Shown one piece after another: positions 24,437 through 32,835 of a DNA stretch of 64,000 nucleotides. Below the pieces are notes generated by a model, which did no database searches, was not told where the DNA came from, and saw only the letters and a list, made by a program, of their open reading frames with translations. Source of the DNA: Bigelowiella natans CCMP2755 (lineage: Eukaryota; Protista; Cercozoa); assembly GCA_000320545.1 (NCBI GenBank), contig ADNK01001529.1, positions 36,807 through 100,806 on the forward strand, written 5' to 3'. Numbering within the stretch: the stretch's first letter is position 1; each line of letters starts with the position of its first letter. The position numbers and the translations under genes are program-made.

Positions 24437-24872
24437 ATAGTGTATGGCTTCTTGCAAGCACGAGAAGACTTCTTGCAGTAGTGGATATGTATAACTTTGA
24501 TCAATGTAGTTTTTGAATCACAGTCGTTGCAGTGTCAGCAGCATTGGCAGCGGCAGCGGTGGCAGAGGTGGTGGCATCCGGAGCAGAAGTTGTTGCATTG
24601 GGAGTGGGAGTTGTGGTGTTGGGAGCAGGAGTTGCAGGAATGACGAGTTTTGGTTTGCAGATGTTTCATCGACCGTTGTCCATGATGATCCAAATCTAGG
24701 TCGTTCCAGCAAACGACAACGGTGCAGCAGAAGCAAGTGAAGAAGGAATGTCGTTGTGCTTTCATTCGCAACCGTAGTTTTTGAAAGATCAAACACTGCA
24801 CTTTCCTTTGATCTGTCTAGCTGTGGCATTCCTTGCTAGCTTGTCGTCACGTGCTGTGCGTGTTGATGCATT

Positions 24873-24976
24873 CTTGATTGTCCACTTTGGAGGCAAAAAT
24901 GGCCACGATCGACGCAAAATGCGATGCTTGAGAGCGCTGCCAAAAGCCAAAGTTGCGATTGCGCGATGCGACATGG
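24873..24976 (-). repeat. Orphan inverted copy (~104 bp) of the transposon right end
   Basis: Reverse complement of 32571-32674 with about 8 mismatches. Confidence 0.85.
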
Positions 24977-25198
24977 TGAGCATTTGCATGCACATCTTTG
25001 ATCGACAGATCTGCACGTTGTGCTCCAGTGATGCTAGTCCAGATCGAGCCACTTGCGATCAATTCCACAGGTCTAGCGAGGTGCACGTTTGTGTCAAACA
25101 CAGCTAGACAGTGATGACAGGTCCACAAAGTCGGCGCGACTTGCACGACAAATTGCAGCGGATTCAGAGCAATGTGCGTTGCGGCCATGCTAGCACAT

Positions 25199-25218
25199 CT
25201 TGGTTGTCCACTTTGGAG
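25199..25218 (+). repeat. Left terminal inverted repeat
   Basis: cttggttgtccactttggag. Confidence 0.85.
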
Positions 25219-25967
25219 ACAAGAACCACGCGCCGCGAGTTGCTGAACCCACGTGTGAAGGCTGCAAACGCGCTTCGTTGCGCAATCGCGATCACGATCG
25301 CCACACGTGCGTCGAAAGCAAATCAAAACTCCCACGCAAACGCGAGCTCAGATTGCAATGTGTGTGAATGTGAAAACCATCTCGTGAAACATGACATGAA
25401 GAATGTGCGAAGTGCAATGACAACGGCGATGTTCTCTTCACAAAGCGGAAACGTGTGCACGCCACATGCGGTCATGCCATGTGTTCCATCTGAGCAAAGT
25501 TGTGCGCATGGCGTCGAGTGCCGAGTGTGATTTGCATCATGTCAGAACAAACAGCATTTGCAGCGTTCTACACTCGACATTGCAAGGCACAAATGATGCC
25601 TTTTCATGCCAATTCAGCCGCGTCAATGATGTGTCACGAATGCACCAGTGCATTCGCAACATTCAGCCGAGAACAGCGACATGCATGCGTCTCATCAATC
25701 TCCAGACAGGCTCACAAGGTCATGAGAGAATGCCACAAAATGAACACGTCTCCATGTGTGTGACTCATCCAATCAATCACAAAAACTGCCATCATCATCA
25801 TCACTGGAAGACAACATGAAAATGTCATCTCCACTGCTGTCATCCATTCCAACATCAGTGTTGGCATGAGGGTCGGCGCACATGGGTTTCGGTGCTTTGT
25901 CCAATCTCCTTGATTTGCGTGTTGGAACCTGATGGAAAAGACAGTTGATGTGTGAAAATGAGCTGAT

Positions 25968-28441
25968 TCATGCATGCAACGTCACCGAGCTAGTGTGAGC
26001 ATCTCGTGAAGTGTGTTCTTGGAGTCTTTGCCTTCTTGTTGCGTTGTGAACAATGCGCAAATCTGCGCCAATTGATGCTGAGCTTGTTTCATCATCATTT
26101 TCATCGTGTTGCATCGCATCTTCAATTGAACTTGGTTCGTCGCTGTCATCGTGTTTGTGTTCACTCGTGTGGTCTGTGCTGGAACTGTCTGATTCATGCT
26201 CGGGGTGATGCCTAGCCATGTTGCTTCGAAACCATTCTGGGCCAGAGTGAATCAGCTCAATGATTTGTTTCTCGAAAGAAGCGATGTGATGCTTGATGCG
26301 GGTTTTGTCCATGCAATTGGATTGTTGGTTGAGTTTTGTTTTGTGCATGTCAACATTGTTTGCAGTTGAATGGCATTTGTTGCAAGTGTGTTTCACGTCA
26401 TCGTCGTGCGATGATTTGTCTTTCACAACTTGAACAAGGTGTTTGATTCGCTCCATGAACCAATTGGATGTCTTTTGCAAGTTCGGAGTGTTGTTTCTGA
26501 TTTCTGGTTGTTTCCGCTGAAGGTGTCCTTCTCCCATGGAAGTGCAAAATGTTTTGGTGCTGTTCCACATTGTTTTCATGATCTTGAAACATTCATTTGC
26601 ATGTTCAATGTCTTTGGAATGGGTGTCCCGAATCACTTTGCGACCACAAATTGACAACATGGATTCACCAGGCTCTTCATTGCCATGATTTGGACTTTTG
26701 CTGAAGTTCAACCAGAAATCAGTGGAGGCATTTCGGTGCATCTCAAGAACAATGTGGTTCATGTGTGTGTTCCTTCCATGTTGCCTGTGTCCAAAATTGG
26801 CAAAAGCTGCCATGACATTTTTGTGCAAACTGAAAAGCATTTGAAAGTCGTCGACTTTCAAAGCGATCATGCAATCATGTAGCAACGGTGTGCAAAACCG
26901 AAGCAAAGAGCACCAAGAATCCAGTTCTTCCCTCTCTGGGATGTGTTGTCGATGAACGCTGCAAGCTGGACACTTGTCAAACGATTCTTTGTTGTCAATG
27001 TTCCAGTTGGCATCCAAAATCTCGTCCATTTCACATTTTTTACCAGAGTGTGTCACTCTTAAGAGTGAAAAAAAGTGCACAATGTGCGCGATGTGCTTTG
27101 GTTTCGATTTCCATTTCTGCCCAGGGCACAGTTTTGCAAATGATGGCATGAAAATGTCTTTGTAGCTTCTCCACACGAGCATGGAAAGAAATTTGCAAGA
27201 GTGCCACCATCCTAGAACAGGCATGATCAGGTTCCTCACATCCAAAATGTGCAAACTTTTTGACCAAAATGCCTGAGCAATGACACACAAGGTTGCGAAT
27301 GTGCCAGTGTGTTCGTGACAAAGTGGAACATTGCAAATGACCTTCAAAATCCTTTCACAAATGGCTGCATCCGAAACCACCGTGATCATGCAATTTTGTG
27401 GAATGTTCTGTTTGCACAAGCTCAATGAAATCTTGAATGGTCCTTCATTTGCCGAGACGTTGTGTTCGTTCATCTCGCAAGGTTGCACATGTGATGGAGC
27501 GTCGACCCGGTTTTTCACGGCCTTGATGCATGCGTTCCTTTTCTTTTCATCTGCCACACATCTCATCACAGTGTCCACTGTCACTTTGATGGGCACATGC
27601 CTGATGTCCCATTTCAAACACAAAGCAACACCGGACAAATTGAACTCAGCTTCGTCGATGAAACGCATGAACCAATTGGATTTGTCACTGAACAATGAGG
27701 TGACATCACATTGAGGATGTCCCTTCTCAATGTGCCAACATGGTTTCTTGACAAAAGGACAGATCACACTCGGATGCTTCTTAACAGCTACTGCACACCA
27801 TTGACAGTTTTTGCACACATTGTTTCCTCTTGGCATTTGAACTGCCAACGCTTTCCCGTGATTGTCAATCCACATCAAGCTCAGTTTTGATTCTCTGATT
27901 TCTGCATCATTCTCAACACGGAGTTGTTTGCATCTCCTTGAGAATGAAGATTTTCCACCACCAATCCCAATCTTGGACAAAAGTTTTGCACCATTTAATG
28001 ATGAACCTCTGAACCGTAATGACATCAACAAGTGTTTCCACTTGGATTGCAACCGCTTGTGCTCCACACTGAGAGCCAGGAGACCCATTGAAACAAAGTG
28101 TCGAATGCACGTGTTGAGATTCTTTTGATTCAATGCACATTTCAATTGTGAACAATGAGACAAATCCCTAAATGTGTTGCATTCTGTCTTCGATGCGAAG
28201 TGGGTGCAGAAAATCTCGAACAACTCGAAGCCAAAGAAACCTGTTTGACAATTGCAATGTCGTTTGTTCATTGTGAATGTTGTGAAGCACACCTTCAGTT
28301 GGGAACAATCTCCTTCCGACTTGAAAAACATCCAAATAAATGTCATCCGATTTGGATTTCATCAAACTCTTCTCTAGTTCGACCAATCTTGTCCTGAATC
28401 CTTTCCATGTGAATCTTGACTGACGACGTTCATTCTTTCCA
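25968..28441 (-). pseudogene. DDE-type transposase (DUF6589/Academ/KDZ-like), hypermutated, probably non-functional
   Basis: 792-aa ORF with motif order WIDN...VVSD...MPVLGWWH...NEEPGE, resembling the D/D/(GxxH)/E layout of DUF6589-type transposases. It has only one Tyr and abundant Cys/His, and reads through an in-frame 69-nt intron (27273-27341). Family assignment is by motif recall, not by search. Confidence 0.6.
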
Positions 28442-31400
28442 CTGATCACAAACATGTATCATGAGTTACGAACATACCAGTACATTCGTAACACAATTTC
28501 TTGAACATTATTTTTGCATTGTGAATTAAAATAAGATGTTGAGTTGAATGTGGATCTTGAAGTTGCATGTTCAATTACATGTTACTTAAAATGACAACAA
28601 AGTGCTTTTTGTAAATTAGGTCAATGAAGAAGCTACGAGTACGAGCCGAAAAATTAATGTTTAAAAACTTTAATTTTTCGTTCGTGACGTTTTTCGTAAT
28701 TTCACCGTAATCACAAATACAAGAGGAGATCACTTGTTTGGCGCCTTGCAAGAGGGCACTCTAGAGTATCACGTGCTCCGCAGCACATTTCGGAAACATT
28801 CGATTGTGCACGCCCAACTACGCTTACTCACGAACCTCATTATGCCAAAGCAAGGATACGGCAAGCTCGACCATGAATGTGAGGGGTTCAATTTTGGGAA
28901 GTGTTCAGAACGTGAGACGGGGTTCGGGTGACAGACTTACACTTTCAATTAGAACTCGCAGCTCACATTGTTCACATCACTGACCATGCCGTGTTTGCAT
29001 CACCTTCTAGGAAAATGCACTGTTTTGGATTCTGTCTGGTGCTTCTCTCGCATGACAGATCCGAACAACCATTGGCAGCTGCACGTCCAACAGCCCGTCG
29101 AAGCAGGCAAGCGGGCCCAATGGAAAAAGTGTGACGTGCACGCGCTGAAGAACACCGAGCGCCGCCAAGTCGCGAACCAGAAAGTGCTGAATGCGCTCAC
29201 CGCGTCGGTGTTTTCCCCGGATGCTGGGAGGGAAACATTGGGTCTTGAACTTGACAAATGGGTTGAAAACAGCGCCATTGCAAGCACAAGATCCAATGAA
29301 CACGCCAAGATGTCTCAATGCAAATCAAAACAAGGCATTTGACAGCATCTTCGCTTGTTTCAAAATGGAATTCTCAAATGTTGCTGTTGTCAGATGTTGC
29401 AAAGGAATTCAAGAAACACCTGAAGAATTTGAAGAAACTCCGCCAGGAACTTGCATCTCAAGACCAACCAGAATCGGTAGTGCAATTTCATCAATTAAAA
29501 CATGGTGACGAATGTGCTGGTACATTCGTAACATTGAAATTATTCTTTGAATAGTCGTCATCATCTGTGCCAAAGACGAAGGACAAGACAACTCCGGGCA
29601 AAGATGCGCCAAGTCAATCAGACTTGAACCTCCAGGGTGATCTTCCAGAAGGAATCACCATTGAAGGTCTTTTGGTTTTTTCACTTTCGTGCGAAACAAC
29701 GTTGACTGTCTTTTGGTTCAGAGTACGAAAAAAATGTGAAGGAAGGAGATGATGCCAAAGTCAAGCTCGGAGCAGAAATGGAGGCATTTGTTGACAAGAT
29801 CTTTCTGGGGACATGCGAGCTGAAGCTGGACCAGCTTGTCGGTCCGGAACATGGGAAGACAGCTTCTCGGAAACTAAGGCAAGGGGAAGTGCGCAAGATT
29901 CGAGATTCAATGATGAGGAACCGGTCTGTTCACATTGTGCTTGGCGCACTTATTCGCCCTTCTGCGCCCGTGTACAAAGAGAAGCAAACTTCTCTCAAAC
30001 GTTCACGGGTGGAACTCAAGCAATTCGTGTCGGAGAACACACTCCAAGTTCAAGATGGCATCTGGGCGGAAGTGATCGATGGGAATCACCGCCGCGTCGC
30101 ACTGCAAGAACTACTGGCAATCCACAATTCTAAACGTTATCGCAAAGTTACTTGCAACGTTTTCTGCACAGATGACCCAGAGGACAACAAGATGATCCGC
30201 AAACATGGTCATCTTGTCAATGAAGCTGACAAAATCAGCATCAAGTCCACAGTGTGGGATGCCATCGCCGAAATGAAGACTAGCTACCTGGAAGCCAAGG
30301 CATTTGATACCAGGTTGGGTCCGACTAGGTTTACTAAAGAACACATTGGGGACTGGAAAGAGCTCACCAGCTCGCATTCCAAAGGTGGTTACGGTGCGAC
30401 CTACCTTAACTTGGTGGTTGGACTCGCACAGTGGAGCGAACACAGCTGGAACCTTTTGGAGAAATTTTACAACCCAGGACCCAACGATGTACATGACGCA
30501 CCCAAGGACTTTGAATGGATCAGCAAGGTTCGCGGAATGGACGAGAAAGATTACACGACAGAGATCAAGAAAGTCACAAGCCTCAAAGATTACACCATCA
30601 AGCAAATGATCGTCAGTCTACAAAAGAAACAATGTGAGTCATCTTTTTTGTTTGTGTCACTGTAGCCTTAGTTCTGGCGTCATCTGTGTTTCAGGGTCCA
30701 AATACCTCACAAGTCTTTTCATGAAGAAATGTGACGTGTCATCATGGGAGGCATCATACGAGAAGTTTCAAGTTCCCAAGAACGACAAGTGGCTCAGTTT
30801 CGCAATCCAGTTCCACCTTGTCAAAAACAAGATGGCTCCAGAGAAGAACAAGCGAGTCATTCCAGAGGTTGTATTGAACAGTTTCCAGAATCATGTTGAT
30901 CAATGCAAGGCAACACGTACGATGGAGGATGCAGAAAGAATTCAACTCAAGGAAGATGCGATCGAGCTCAACATCGTCACCGGAGTCGTCGTCAAGAAAC
31001 TAGGGATCGTCATGCAAAACAAGGGCAAATCAATAAGTATGTACTTTTTTTTACAGTTACGAATGTACCAGTATTTTCGTAACACTGTACTTTTTTATTA
31101 GATCACGTCTTTGTTGACACTCTTGTTGGAGCTTTCGATATCGGGCAGTCTTTCGACGACAAGCAACTCAACATCTACGTCAACAAGATCCATGCTGGCA
31201 AACAGCTGGATTTTGATCGCCATATTACTGGCGACTTCACCCTCACCATTCGGTGTCTCCCTGAAAACTCTAACTCTTTCAGTGAGCTCATCAACAAGTG
31301 TGGGTATGACGACGTCGACGTGCTCTATGCATACGAGCACGATCGACGTCCACAAAAGCCTAAGACCTCTTTCGCTCCGATGATTGACGCATACATCATC

Positions 31401-31950
31401 GCGAAGAACGGGTCTTACGCGCAAGTGGACTTTGGGAAGCGCGAAAACCTCATCGTCACTTCGAGTCCAAAGTCCATCACCGTGGACGGCAAGCTTTTCG
31501 CGGTGGATAGAAAAGGCGATGTGATGGAACATCTATGCCTTACTTTGTATGAGGAAAGATCTACTGTCCTCATTGCCCATGGTGGGCAAGGGTTCGACGC
31601 GTGTGCACTGTTGCACTTCACACGCAACTGCATTCAGTTGAACCGCCACCAGGAGATTACCAACCGCACCAAGGCCAAAGTCCACTCGATGACTACAACT
31701 AAGGATCCATCTTCTCAAAAAGCGCTGTTCGAGACCAAGTTCAATTCCATCTTGACCAAGTACAGTGCCCTTCAAAGTTTTGGAAAGCACTGGCATGACC
31801 TTGGCCGCATGGAGGGGAAGAAGCTCGCTGGTGGATCCGACGACGAAGAAACATCTCTTGTTGATATCGTCAAGAAAAGTGTCAGTGCAGCCAAAGGCAA
31901 AGGTATACAACTCATTTTGATTGTTACTTGTGTACTGGTATATTCGTAAC
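27292..31950. repeat. Five dispersed copies of a 28-bp palindrome (consensus GTTACGAATGTACCAGTACATTCGTAAC) at 27292-27319, 28465-28492, 29505-29532, 31056-31083 and 31923-31950
   Basis: Copies read directly from the sequence; each lies inside a predicted intron of the element's genes. Confidence 0.9.
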
Positions 31951-32252
31951 CCATGCATTTCTCAGGTGAGAAACGCCCTCACACTTTGCGTGCCAGAGTG
32001 TCTCCTGCGAAGAAGGCCAAGACCGCCAAGACTGTGGGCAAGTCCATGAAGCGCCGCACGTCCGATCCTCCGCAGTGTGGCTTTTGCAAGAGGCCCGTTT
32101 TGCCCAACGAGCTTGGGCGATGTGCTGAATGCGACGAGGTCGGCCACAAGGATTGCTTGGCCCACAAGAGCATCAAGTTCAAGTTGCGATTCTGTTCTGA
32201 AGACTGCAAAAACGCGTACGAACAGATTGCTCACGCGGCAGCAAAACTTTAG
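28842..32252 (+). CDS. Transposon-borne ParB/Srx-like domain + degenerate beta-class N4/N6 DNA methyltransferase fold + PHD finger protein (multi-exon; start approximate)
   Basis: EVIDGNHRRVALQEL is the ParB GxxR motif. The exon from 31101 has DHVFVDTLV (motif-IV position) and then RKGDVMEHLCLTLYEERSTVLIAHGGQGFDACALLHFTRNCIQLN (motif X/I-II layout). The last exon has CGFC...CAECDEVGHKDCL...FCSEDC. Exon junctions at ~29335-29392, 29477-29554 and 29667-29721 were checked and keep frame. Confidence 0.7.
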
Positions 32253-32654
32253 ACAAAAAAAAAAAAAAAAATTGACCCATTTCTGTGTGTCTCATCGCTT
32301 TCCTGATGAGAAAAAGCTCTGTCTATGGTCTGTTCATCCTTTTTTGGCCACCTCATTTCAATCTCAACTGCATGTATTTTTCAATGTAAATTCATTCAAC
32401 ACAACATTTACATGCACAATTTTTCTTTGATGCATTTCAAAACGCGCTTCATTTTGCAATTTGCTGACTTGCCTCCGTTTGCTCTCGCATCTGCCATGCA
32501 CATGTTTGATTCGCTGACCCATTTGCACGTGTTCATTCTCATGCTGCGCTGCGTTCGCGATTTTTCCCCGCCATGTCAGTTCGCGCAATCGCAACTTTGG
32601 CTTTTGACAGCGCTCTCAAGCATCACATTTTGCGTCGATCGTGACAATTTTTGC

Positions 32655-32674
32655 CTCCAAAGTGGACAACCAAG
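32655..32674 (-). repeat. Right terminal inverted repeat
   Basis: ctccaaagtggacaaccaag, the exact reverse complement of the left TIR. Confidence 0.85.
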
Positions 32675-32835
32675 ACATGTAGTTGCCAATTTCACAACTC
32701 CATGCCATGTGCCATTCATTTGCGCACTTTCTTTGACGACCGCACACGCTAGCACGTTTGCAACGTAGCAGGCGCCTACGAAAGCCACTGGCGCTAAAGA
32801 ATGCTTCGCGACTAGCATTGCAGCAGTAGGCGCAT

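Follow-up and report, generated by a model that had tools for sequence, protein, structure and literature searches.

A lineage-specific palindrome kept in the introns and other non-coding DNA of a chlorarachniophyte DNA transposon family

The transposon and its palindromes

The window analyzed here, a 64-kb stretch of the Bigelowiella natans CCMP2755 genome (contig ADNK01001529.1), contains a 7.5-kb DNA transposon at 25198-32675, which is bounded by 28-nt terminal inverted repeats (TIRs) and carries two divergent genes: one coding for a transposase-like protein on the minus strand and an accessory gene on the plus strand. A 28-mer palindrome, written GTYRCGAAYRYRCYRGYRYRTTCGYRAC, is present six times in this element, each copy matching this sequence with 0-3 mismatches; its general form is GTTACGAATGTAC-YR-GTACATTCGTAAC, in which YR is a pyrimidine-purine step. 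As detailed below, this 28-mer is a family-specific and probable cis element kept in the non-coding DNA of the transposon. The element ends, genes and palindromes are arranged as follows, with homology in other copies of the element beginning at about 25193-25200:

25198-25225: left terminal inverted repeat, 28 nt, 93% complementary to 32648-32675
32648-32675: right terminal inverted repeat, pairing with the left one
25968-28362, minus strand: transposase-like gene, with its ATG at 28362 and a long open frame at 25968-28346; without a Pfam family
28986-32252, plus strand: accessory (cargo) gene of six exons, weakly matching DndB/DGQHR (ParB-like) and with a PHD-like end; the reading frame of exon 1 is tentative
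25633-25660: palindrome S0, about 310 nt 3' of the stop codon of the minus-strand gene, with 0 mismatches against the YR pattern and with orthologs in 6 other copies of the element
27292-27319: palindrome S1, inside the 69-nt intron 27273-27341 of the minus-strand gene
28465-28492: palindrome S2, in the divergent promoter or 5' untranslated region (UTR), about 80 nt upstream of the minus-strand ATG and within a candidate 65-nt GT..AG unit (28442-28506, minus strand)
29505-29532: palindrome S3, in intron P1
31056-31083: palindrome S4, in intron P4
31923-31950: palindrome S5, in intron P5

Five of these copies (S1 to S5) had been recorded in a first-pass annotation of the window, and all five are real at the coordinates it gave; its list was incomplete by S0. 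Beyond the six, the next best matches in the 64-kb window have 6-7 mismatches, and shuffled sequences yield none. The sites are spaced by about 0.9-1.7 kb (about 1.2 kb) along the 7.5-kb element, those nearest to the TIRs lying about 410 bp from the left and 700 bp from the right one. There is no general excess of palindromes in the window, the count of the type with 11-nt arms being at chance level, and comparisons of the palindrome arms with the TIRs of the element, as well as a search for half-sites elsewhere in it, gave nothing above chance. We rejected a miniature inverted-repeat or foldback element as the source of the 28-mer: it has no dispersed copies, no consistent duplication flanks it, and its arms are unrelated to the TIRs of the transposon. 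Between sites, the similarity beyond the 28-mer is weak, comprising TTTTGAT/TTTCAAT on one side and CATG or a YR-rich stretch on the other, with a 55-nt match at 71% between the introns P1 and P4. The palindrome is separated from the two splice sites by 19-28 nt and 15-23 nt, and the flanks that contain these sites are mostly unique. The introns, together with those that are free of the palindrome, are:

29477-29554, plus strand: intron P1, 78 nt, GT..AG, with an in-frame stop at its end and an open frame on both sides; contains the palindrome at 29505-29532
29667-29721, plus strand: intron P2, 55 nt, without the palindrome and with only a short TTTCG-TG-CGAAA dyad; an 11-nt direct repeat lies at both ends
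30634-30694, plus strand: intron P3, 61 nt, without the palindrome; its equivalent in the Amorphochlora amoebiformis element L070 has one
31037-31101, plus strand: intron P4, 65 nt, phase 1, called by frame logic; contains the palindrome at 31056-31083, and the same position in the A. amoebiformis element L064 also has a palindrome
31903-31965, plus strand: intron P5, 63 nt, phase 1, called by frame logic; contains the palindrome at 31923-31950, as do its equivalents in L064, L070 and the environmental contig L063
27273-27341, minus strand: intron S1, 69 nt, phase 0, in frame and stop-free, called by comparison of homologs; contains the palindrome at 27292-27319
28241-28292, minus strand: intron Ma, 52 nt, without a full palindrome; skipped by the Joint Genome Institute (JGI) gene models P0001 and P0002

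In the plus-strand gene, the five GT..AG introns P1-P5 jointly restore one reading frame, and the last four of them are all phase 1. The initial proposal that the five copies occupy five introns of both genes thus stands only in part: the reading frame demands introns for just the copies at 29505, 31056 and 31923, that at 27292 is placed in an intron by its homologs, and that at 28465 lies before the start codon, where the intron is a candidate only. Likewise, the proposed distance of 15-22 nt between the palindrome and the 3' AG holds for the plus-strand introns (22, 18 and 15 nt in P1, P4 and P5) and for the copy at 27292 (19 nt), with the candidate intron at 28465 falling just outside it at 23 nt.

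The S1 segment is translated by the JGI models. In the protein alignment, a conserved block ending in ..R.LK is followed by a non-conserved stretch and then by a conserved ..WSKS..LG.WHS.K, and one A. amoebiformis gene model joins the K directly to an A across this point. At the DNA level, a GT..AG segment starts right after this lysine codon in seven lineages, and the A. amoebiformis equivalent is 56 nt long and breaks the frame. Since distant homologs share such a segment after the same lysine codon, and it is frame-breaking in A. amoebiformis, S1 is on this comparative evidence a real intron, which is older than the divergence of the compared lineages; hence, the in-frame 69 nt translated by the gene models are taken to be intronic. 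The A. amoebiformis models are predictions of the funannotate pipeline that are mutually inconsistent on the S1-equivalent intron, and the call rests on conservation and frame.

In two of the introns, an 11-nt direct repeat without mismatches has one copy near the 5' end and the other near the 3' end: GTCTTTTGGTT in P2 and TGTACTTTTTT in P4 (p of about 0.001 each against shuffles). As both copies of each repeat lie inside the intron, they do not constitute an exon-restoring target-site duplication.

Family restriction and compensated change of the palindromes

A scan of the 91-Mb B. natans assembly recovered 34 sites at up to 2 mismatches and 39 at up to 3, against 1 for a reversed-pattern control. 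As many as 35 of the 39 sites fall in copies of this transposon family, three in a single foldback on contig C2616, and the remaining one is an unrelated palindrome. The absence of the motif from host genes, first seen within the window, extends to the entire genome: none carries it across the 91 Mb, with about 170,000 host introns included. This excludes both that the motif is a generic branch-point context and that it is a genome-wide introner. The other copies of the element are 71-96% identical to that in the window, and all six sites are orthologous in every element copy, down to 71-80% identity. A paralog of only 29% identity is located on contig C1447. Beyond this genome, a motif scan of public metagenomes returned one unrelated GC-rich bacterial terminator, and a scan of viral contigs gave no match.

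The C2616 locus records a separate event, in which an unrelated high-copy repeat received, in its non-coding 3' end, a palindrome-bearing segment of about 50 nt that was then duplicated locally; other copies of this type of repeat are without the segment. The foldback itself (C2616:16918-17921) consists of two inverted copies of an approximately 280-bp end of an unrelated repeat family with over 100 genome hits. Between these arms lie palindrome-bearing units of about 95 bp, three times plus once, and the palindrome is found in that repeat copy only.

Homologous elements carry palindromes of their own, lineage-specific sequence, both in the same introns and in intergenic DNA; indeed, the intron positions S1, P4 and P5 are shared with homologous elements that have their own palindromes there. 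In the A. amoebiformis element L064, there are five copies of a 30-mer, GTTAAGATTTCTAC-YR-GTAGAAATCTTAAC, distributed over the introns equivalent to S1, P4 and P5, the DNA between the genes and the upstream region. In L070, which represents a second subfamily of this species, a version shorter by one base, AAGATTTTAC-YR-GTAAAATCTT, occupies the S1-, P3- and P5-equivalent introns, with intron P4 being absent. The palindromes of A. amoebiformis end 12-24 nt before the AG. The TARA contig L066 has two copies of its palindrome, one of them in the S1-equivalent intron. A distinct arrangement is seen in the metagenome contig L065, which has at least 10 copies of TTTCGTATGCATACGAAA: four are intronic, three form a tandem array with a 24-26 bp spacing in upstream non-coding DNA, and the others lie in the flanks. 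Here, the intronic copies follow the 5' splice site at a distance of only 6-9 nt and are 33-37 nt away from the AG, and there is no second gene between the palindromes of this contig.

Two of the contigs harboring these homologs display further features. The sequence L063 (GCA_038745735.1, JBCDLE010001248.1), a 1229-bp contig labeled as a metagenome-assembled genome (MAG) of Myxococcota, is a decayed copy of this chlorarachniophyte transposon, which covers part of exon 4, exon 5, the introns P4 and P5 with their palindromes and the start of exon 6. This is eukaryotic DNA that was binned into a bacterial MAG. On the 373-kb contig with the truncated A. amoebiformis copy L064, telomere-like TTAGGG repeats interleaved with GTGTCGG repeats adjoin the element (L064 5080-5400).

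What the palindromes of B. natans and A. amoebiformis have in common are the ends, GTTA and TAAC, and the center, TAC-YR-GTA; every other difference between them is mirrored in the opposite arm. Across 19 palindromes, 11 of the 14 pairs have changed on both sides, giving 46 compensated cells against 18.2 +/- 2.9 in shuffles (a value reached in 0 of 500), and a covariation score of 0.495 against at most 0.13 when the partners are slid. B. natans, the two A. amoebiformis subfamilies, L066 and L065 each have their own version, and this version is uniform within an element. Taken together, the likeness within an element and the difference between lineages therefore point to sequence-specific recognition or to homogenization, rather than to the maintenance of just any hairpin. 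No sense-strand wobble bias is discernible in the mismatches between the arms, with 47 G.T against 43 A.C.

Most differences between the copies of the element within B. natans are transitions at YpR steps. In the window copy, there are 125 TpA dinucleotides (16.7 per kb), as opposed to 0-30 in the other copies, which show mixtures of CA and TG at these 125 sites; yet even the window copy has a TpA odds ratio of just 0.22, the value for the host DNA that flanks it being 0.76. This pattern fits a copy-specific A-to-G change at TpA, on either strand, in the other copies. Because of the CA/TG mixtures, and because A. amoebiformis has TA at the same palindrome steps, the TpA version is by this comparison ancestral and the window copy the least altered; the same A. 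amoebiformis steps mark the palindrome consensus that was read from the window alone as the ancestral one. These two observations also led us to reject the opposite polarity, with the TA-rich window copy as a derived product of a process like repeat-induced point mutation. The rate of transitions in the palindromes is 5-7 times that of composition-matched runs, an excess that is explained by their TpA richness, and we accordingly discarded the idea that they are structural mutation hot spots. Flipping of the palindromes was likewise discarded: the sites S3 and S5 keep asymmetric marks in all copies, and S4 alone is ambiguous.

Proteins and other features of the element

Close protein relatives are JGI Bigna1 gene models only, and none of the protein relatives found is transcript-derived; all protein searches were made with single exons. 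An exhaustive HMMER search of 1.84 billion representative proteins recovered 38 distant relatives of the transposase-like protein, at 17-38% identity, and wherever a contig was looked up these came from B. natans, A. amoebiformis or an environmental metagenome. The protein has no match in Pfam or NCBIfam, and its family profile no relative in the PDB; an embedding search gave a lead to DUF6589, at the level of the embedding only.

Exon 3 of the accessory gene codes for a DGNHRR motif and matches DndB (PF14072) with an E-value of 1e-4 and 21.9 bits, below the cut-off of 29.1, and DGQHR (TIGR03187) with an E-value of 0.009 and 15.8 bits, below the cut-off of 58.85. No PDB relative was found. The ParB/DGQHR-like core (29850-30242, residues 43-173 of exon 3) is missing in frame from the A. 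amoebiformis homolog L070 (6318-7064), a difference that could reflect either an insertion in the B. natans lineage or a loss in A. amoebiformis. In L064, the whole ParB-like region is deleted.

Three further repeats were noted at this locus. The terminal repeat of the right end has an additional copy of 105 nt (24872-24976), which is situated outside the element at about 220 bp from the left TIR; it is 92% complementary to 32571-32675 and may be the solo end of another insertion. The divergent promoter has a further inverted repeat, CCGAAAAATTAA..TTAATTTTTCG (28646-28681), which is present in the copy C3106 too. Finally, a perfect palindrome with 11-nt arms, TTTGAAAGTCG-T-CGACTTTCAAA, is located inside the coding sequence of the transposase-like gene (26840-26862).

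Possible roles of the palindromes

We tentatively favor a reading in which the palindromes are dyad-symmetric DNA sites for a protein encoded by the element itself, comparable to the VANDAL/VANC systems of plants, because the motif combines conservation and dyad symmetry with a restriction to the non-coding DNA of the element, and because its copies agree within one element but diverge from lineage to lineage. Moreover, the arrays outside introns and the positions next to the 5' splice site in L065 make the non-coding DNA of the element, and not the branch point, the common denominator. From the observed distribution, family restriction, positional conservation and compensated evolution we infer binding by a protein and, beyond it, the likely identity of the binder and its effect. 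A dimeric, sequence-specific protein, either the transposase-like or the accessory one, would recognize the dyad as double-stranded DNA, and binding at sites about 1.2 kb apart would let it mark the whole element. Such marking might serve, for instance, in countering silencing, in regulating both genes or in helping the assembly of the transposition complex. Sites and protein would change together, resulting in a version for each lineage and in agreement among the copies within one element. In the short introns of B. natans and A. amoebiformis, where the conserved ..TAAC falls at the place necessary for a branch point, the same sequence may secondarily double as one. Of the three explanations raised by the first-pass annotation, namely operator sites for a ParB-like protein, an introner-like element and a regulatory RNA hairpin, it is the first that is best supported in its general form, by the family specificity of the motif, its presence in all kinds of non-coding DNA and its concerted, compensated change; its specific link to ParB and parS is weakened by the sub-cut-off matches and by relatives that are without the segment.

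A more elaborate proposal would be that these chlorarachniophyte DNA transposons constitute a hitherto undescribed family with a system of self-recognition, in which its own protein binds long dyads in nearly every intron and UTR, the two co-evolve such that each lineage recognizes only itself, the outcome is VANC-type anti-silencing or a parS-like tether, and the very same sequence supplies the branch point, thereby coupling binding or a hairpin to splicing. We consider it rather unlikely that all these parts hold together.

Several other transposable elements offer partial parallels. The 12-bp TnpA motifs of En/Spm, the subterminal hexamers of Ac/Ds and the internal enhancer of Mu are element-specific binding motifs, some of them lying in inverted pairs and overlapping the promoter or the first intron, and they cluster within a few hundred base pairs of the ends. 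The resemblance lies in having multiple element-specific copies inside the element; unlike those motifs, the B. natans sites are spread along the whole 7.5 kb. The closest documented analog is VANC21 of the Arabidopsis element VANDAL21, which binds a family-specific motif in its own introns, intergenic and terminal non-coding regions, with motif and protein co-evolving (PMC5735166). The motifs of the Mutator-like VANDAL elements and the B. natans dyad are alike in being family-specific, in occurring in the introns and in the intergenic and terminal non-coding DNA of their own element, in being absent from coding DNA, in not being concentrated elsewhere in the genome and in differing between related families. 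However, the VANC motif (Hosaka et al. 2017, PMC5735166) is a non-palindromic sequence of 9 bp that works in densely arrayed tandem copies, whereas the B. natans site is a dyad of 28-30 bp that is present once per intron and is a candidate for binding by analogy; the proteins are unrelated.

Several points weigh against an element-encoded binder. A DNA-binding domain was found in neither of the two proteins, Pfam returning no family. The B. natans sites are single rather than arrayed, and none lies within 400 bp of the termini. Three more distant homologs, on the short contigs L067-L069, are without a clear repeated palindrome. A semblance of selection for dyad symmetry could also arise from arm-to-arm correction in a DNA hairpin combined with gene conversion among the sites. 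Lastly, the ectopic unit of about 50 nt in C2616 amounts to copying without a link to the proteins of the element.

This last event also supports the strongest of the rival explanations, which we regard as improbable: a selfish, functionless palindromic unit of about 35-50 nt, multiplying by copy-and-paste, would have colonized the non-coding DNA of the family and founded or enlarged some of its introns, while staying confined to the element. The insertion of such a segment into an unrelated repeat and its local duplication, together with the weak flank similarity between sites, including the 55-nt P1/P4 match, the 11-nt direct repeats of P2 and P4 and the turnover in occupancy, with a palindrome in the P3 intron of L070 but not of B. 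natans and with the P4 intron missing from L070, are all in its favor. However, the 91 Mb of the assembly include 0 copies of such a unit in host DNA, S1 as an intron long predates the palindrome variants, and the direct repeats are intronic rather than an exon-restoring target-site duplication. Furthermore, a neutral passenger is not expected to be homogeneous within elements, nor to be compensated in both arms at all sites between lineages.

Somewhat less probable still is the possibility that the palindromes function in the pre-mRNA as a hairpin that would tune the splicing of both transposon genes by including or covering the branch point, a ..UAAC located 15-23 nt from the 3' AG. The geometry proposed for it at the outset fits two lineages: the gap between palindrome and AG is 15-23 nt in the B. 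natans introns P1, P4, P5, S1 and the candidate S2 intron and 12-24 nt in A. amoebiformis, and the ..TAAC end is conserved between both species. Folding predictions for P1, P4 and the candidate S2 intron give hairpins whose centroid energies are about -9 to -16 kcal/mol, and the stem covariation is as expected of a structured RNA. However, the fold z-scores of the introns in the window are weak (+0.08 to -2.2), the arm mismatches lack the sense-strand wobble bias that G.U pairing would leave, and three introns of the element do without the palindrome. S0 and probably S2 lie outside demonstrated introns, and the palindromes of the third lineage, L065, adjoin the 5' splice site or form extra-intronic tandem arrays. 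Moreover, such a role needs no sequence shared among the sites of an element. Hence, a branch-point hairpin is unlikely as the general role, and it may have a secondary effect in the short introns.

A direct counterpart of bacterial partition, with the ParB/DndB-like domain of the accessory protein being loaded at the palindromes in the manner of parS, appears to us yet more doubtful. The 16-bp parS sites are dispersed palindromes, often within genes, that are bound by a dimeric protein encoded nearby, and in favor of the idea are this dispersal of palindromic sites and the DGNHRR motif of exon 3 with its weak DndB and DGQHR matches. Against it, both matches fall below the curated cut-offs, and relatives without the domain keep their palindromes: L070 is without the matched segment and L064 without the whole region. 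L065 shows no second gene between the palindromes.

Introners, such as those of Micromonas, Aureococcus, dinoflagellates and fungi, resemble the present case in placing near-identical short sequences, some with inverted repeats or stable folds, in several introns; however, they bring a splice site with them and are spread over hundreds to thousands of host genes, whereas the B. natans motif is in 0 host genes, has its splice sites in unique flanks and is younger than at least one intron that holds it (S1, in which distant homologs have other palindromes or none). The suggestion of a genome-wide introner is thus refuted by the lack of host copies and the antiquity of the intron at 27292, with copy-and-paste of a unit of about 50 nt having nonetheless occurred at least once, in C2616.

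What is settled is that the motif is neither a host branch-point context nor a genome-wide introner. The compensated variants of B. natans, the two Amorphochlora subfamilies and the marine metagenome lineages amount to natural specificity swaps for use in experiments. If the palindromes are indeed self-recognition sites, this family would join the plant VANDAL/VANC system as a second, independent example of transposons that mark their own non-coding DNA for one of their proteins, here in a distant supergroup, Rhizaria, and with a different site architecture.

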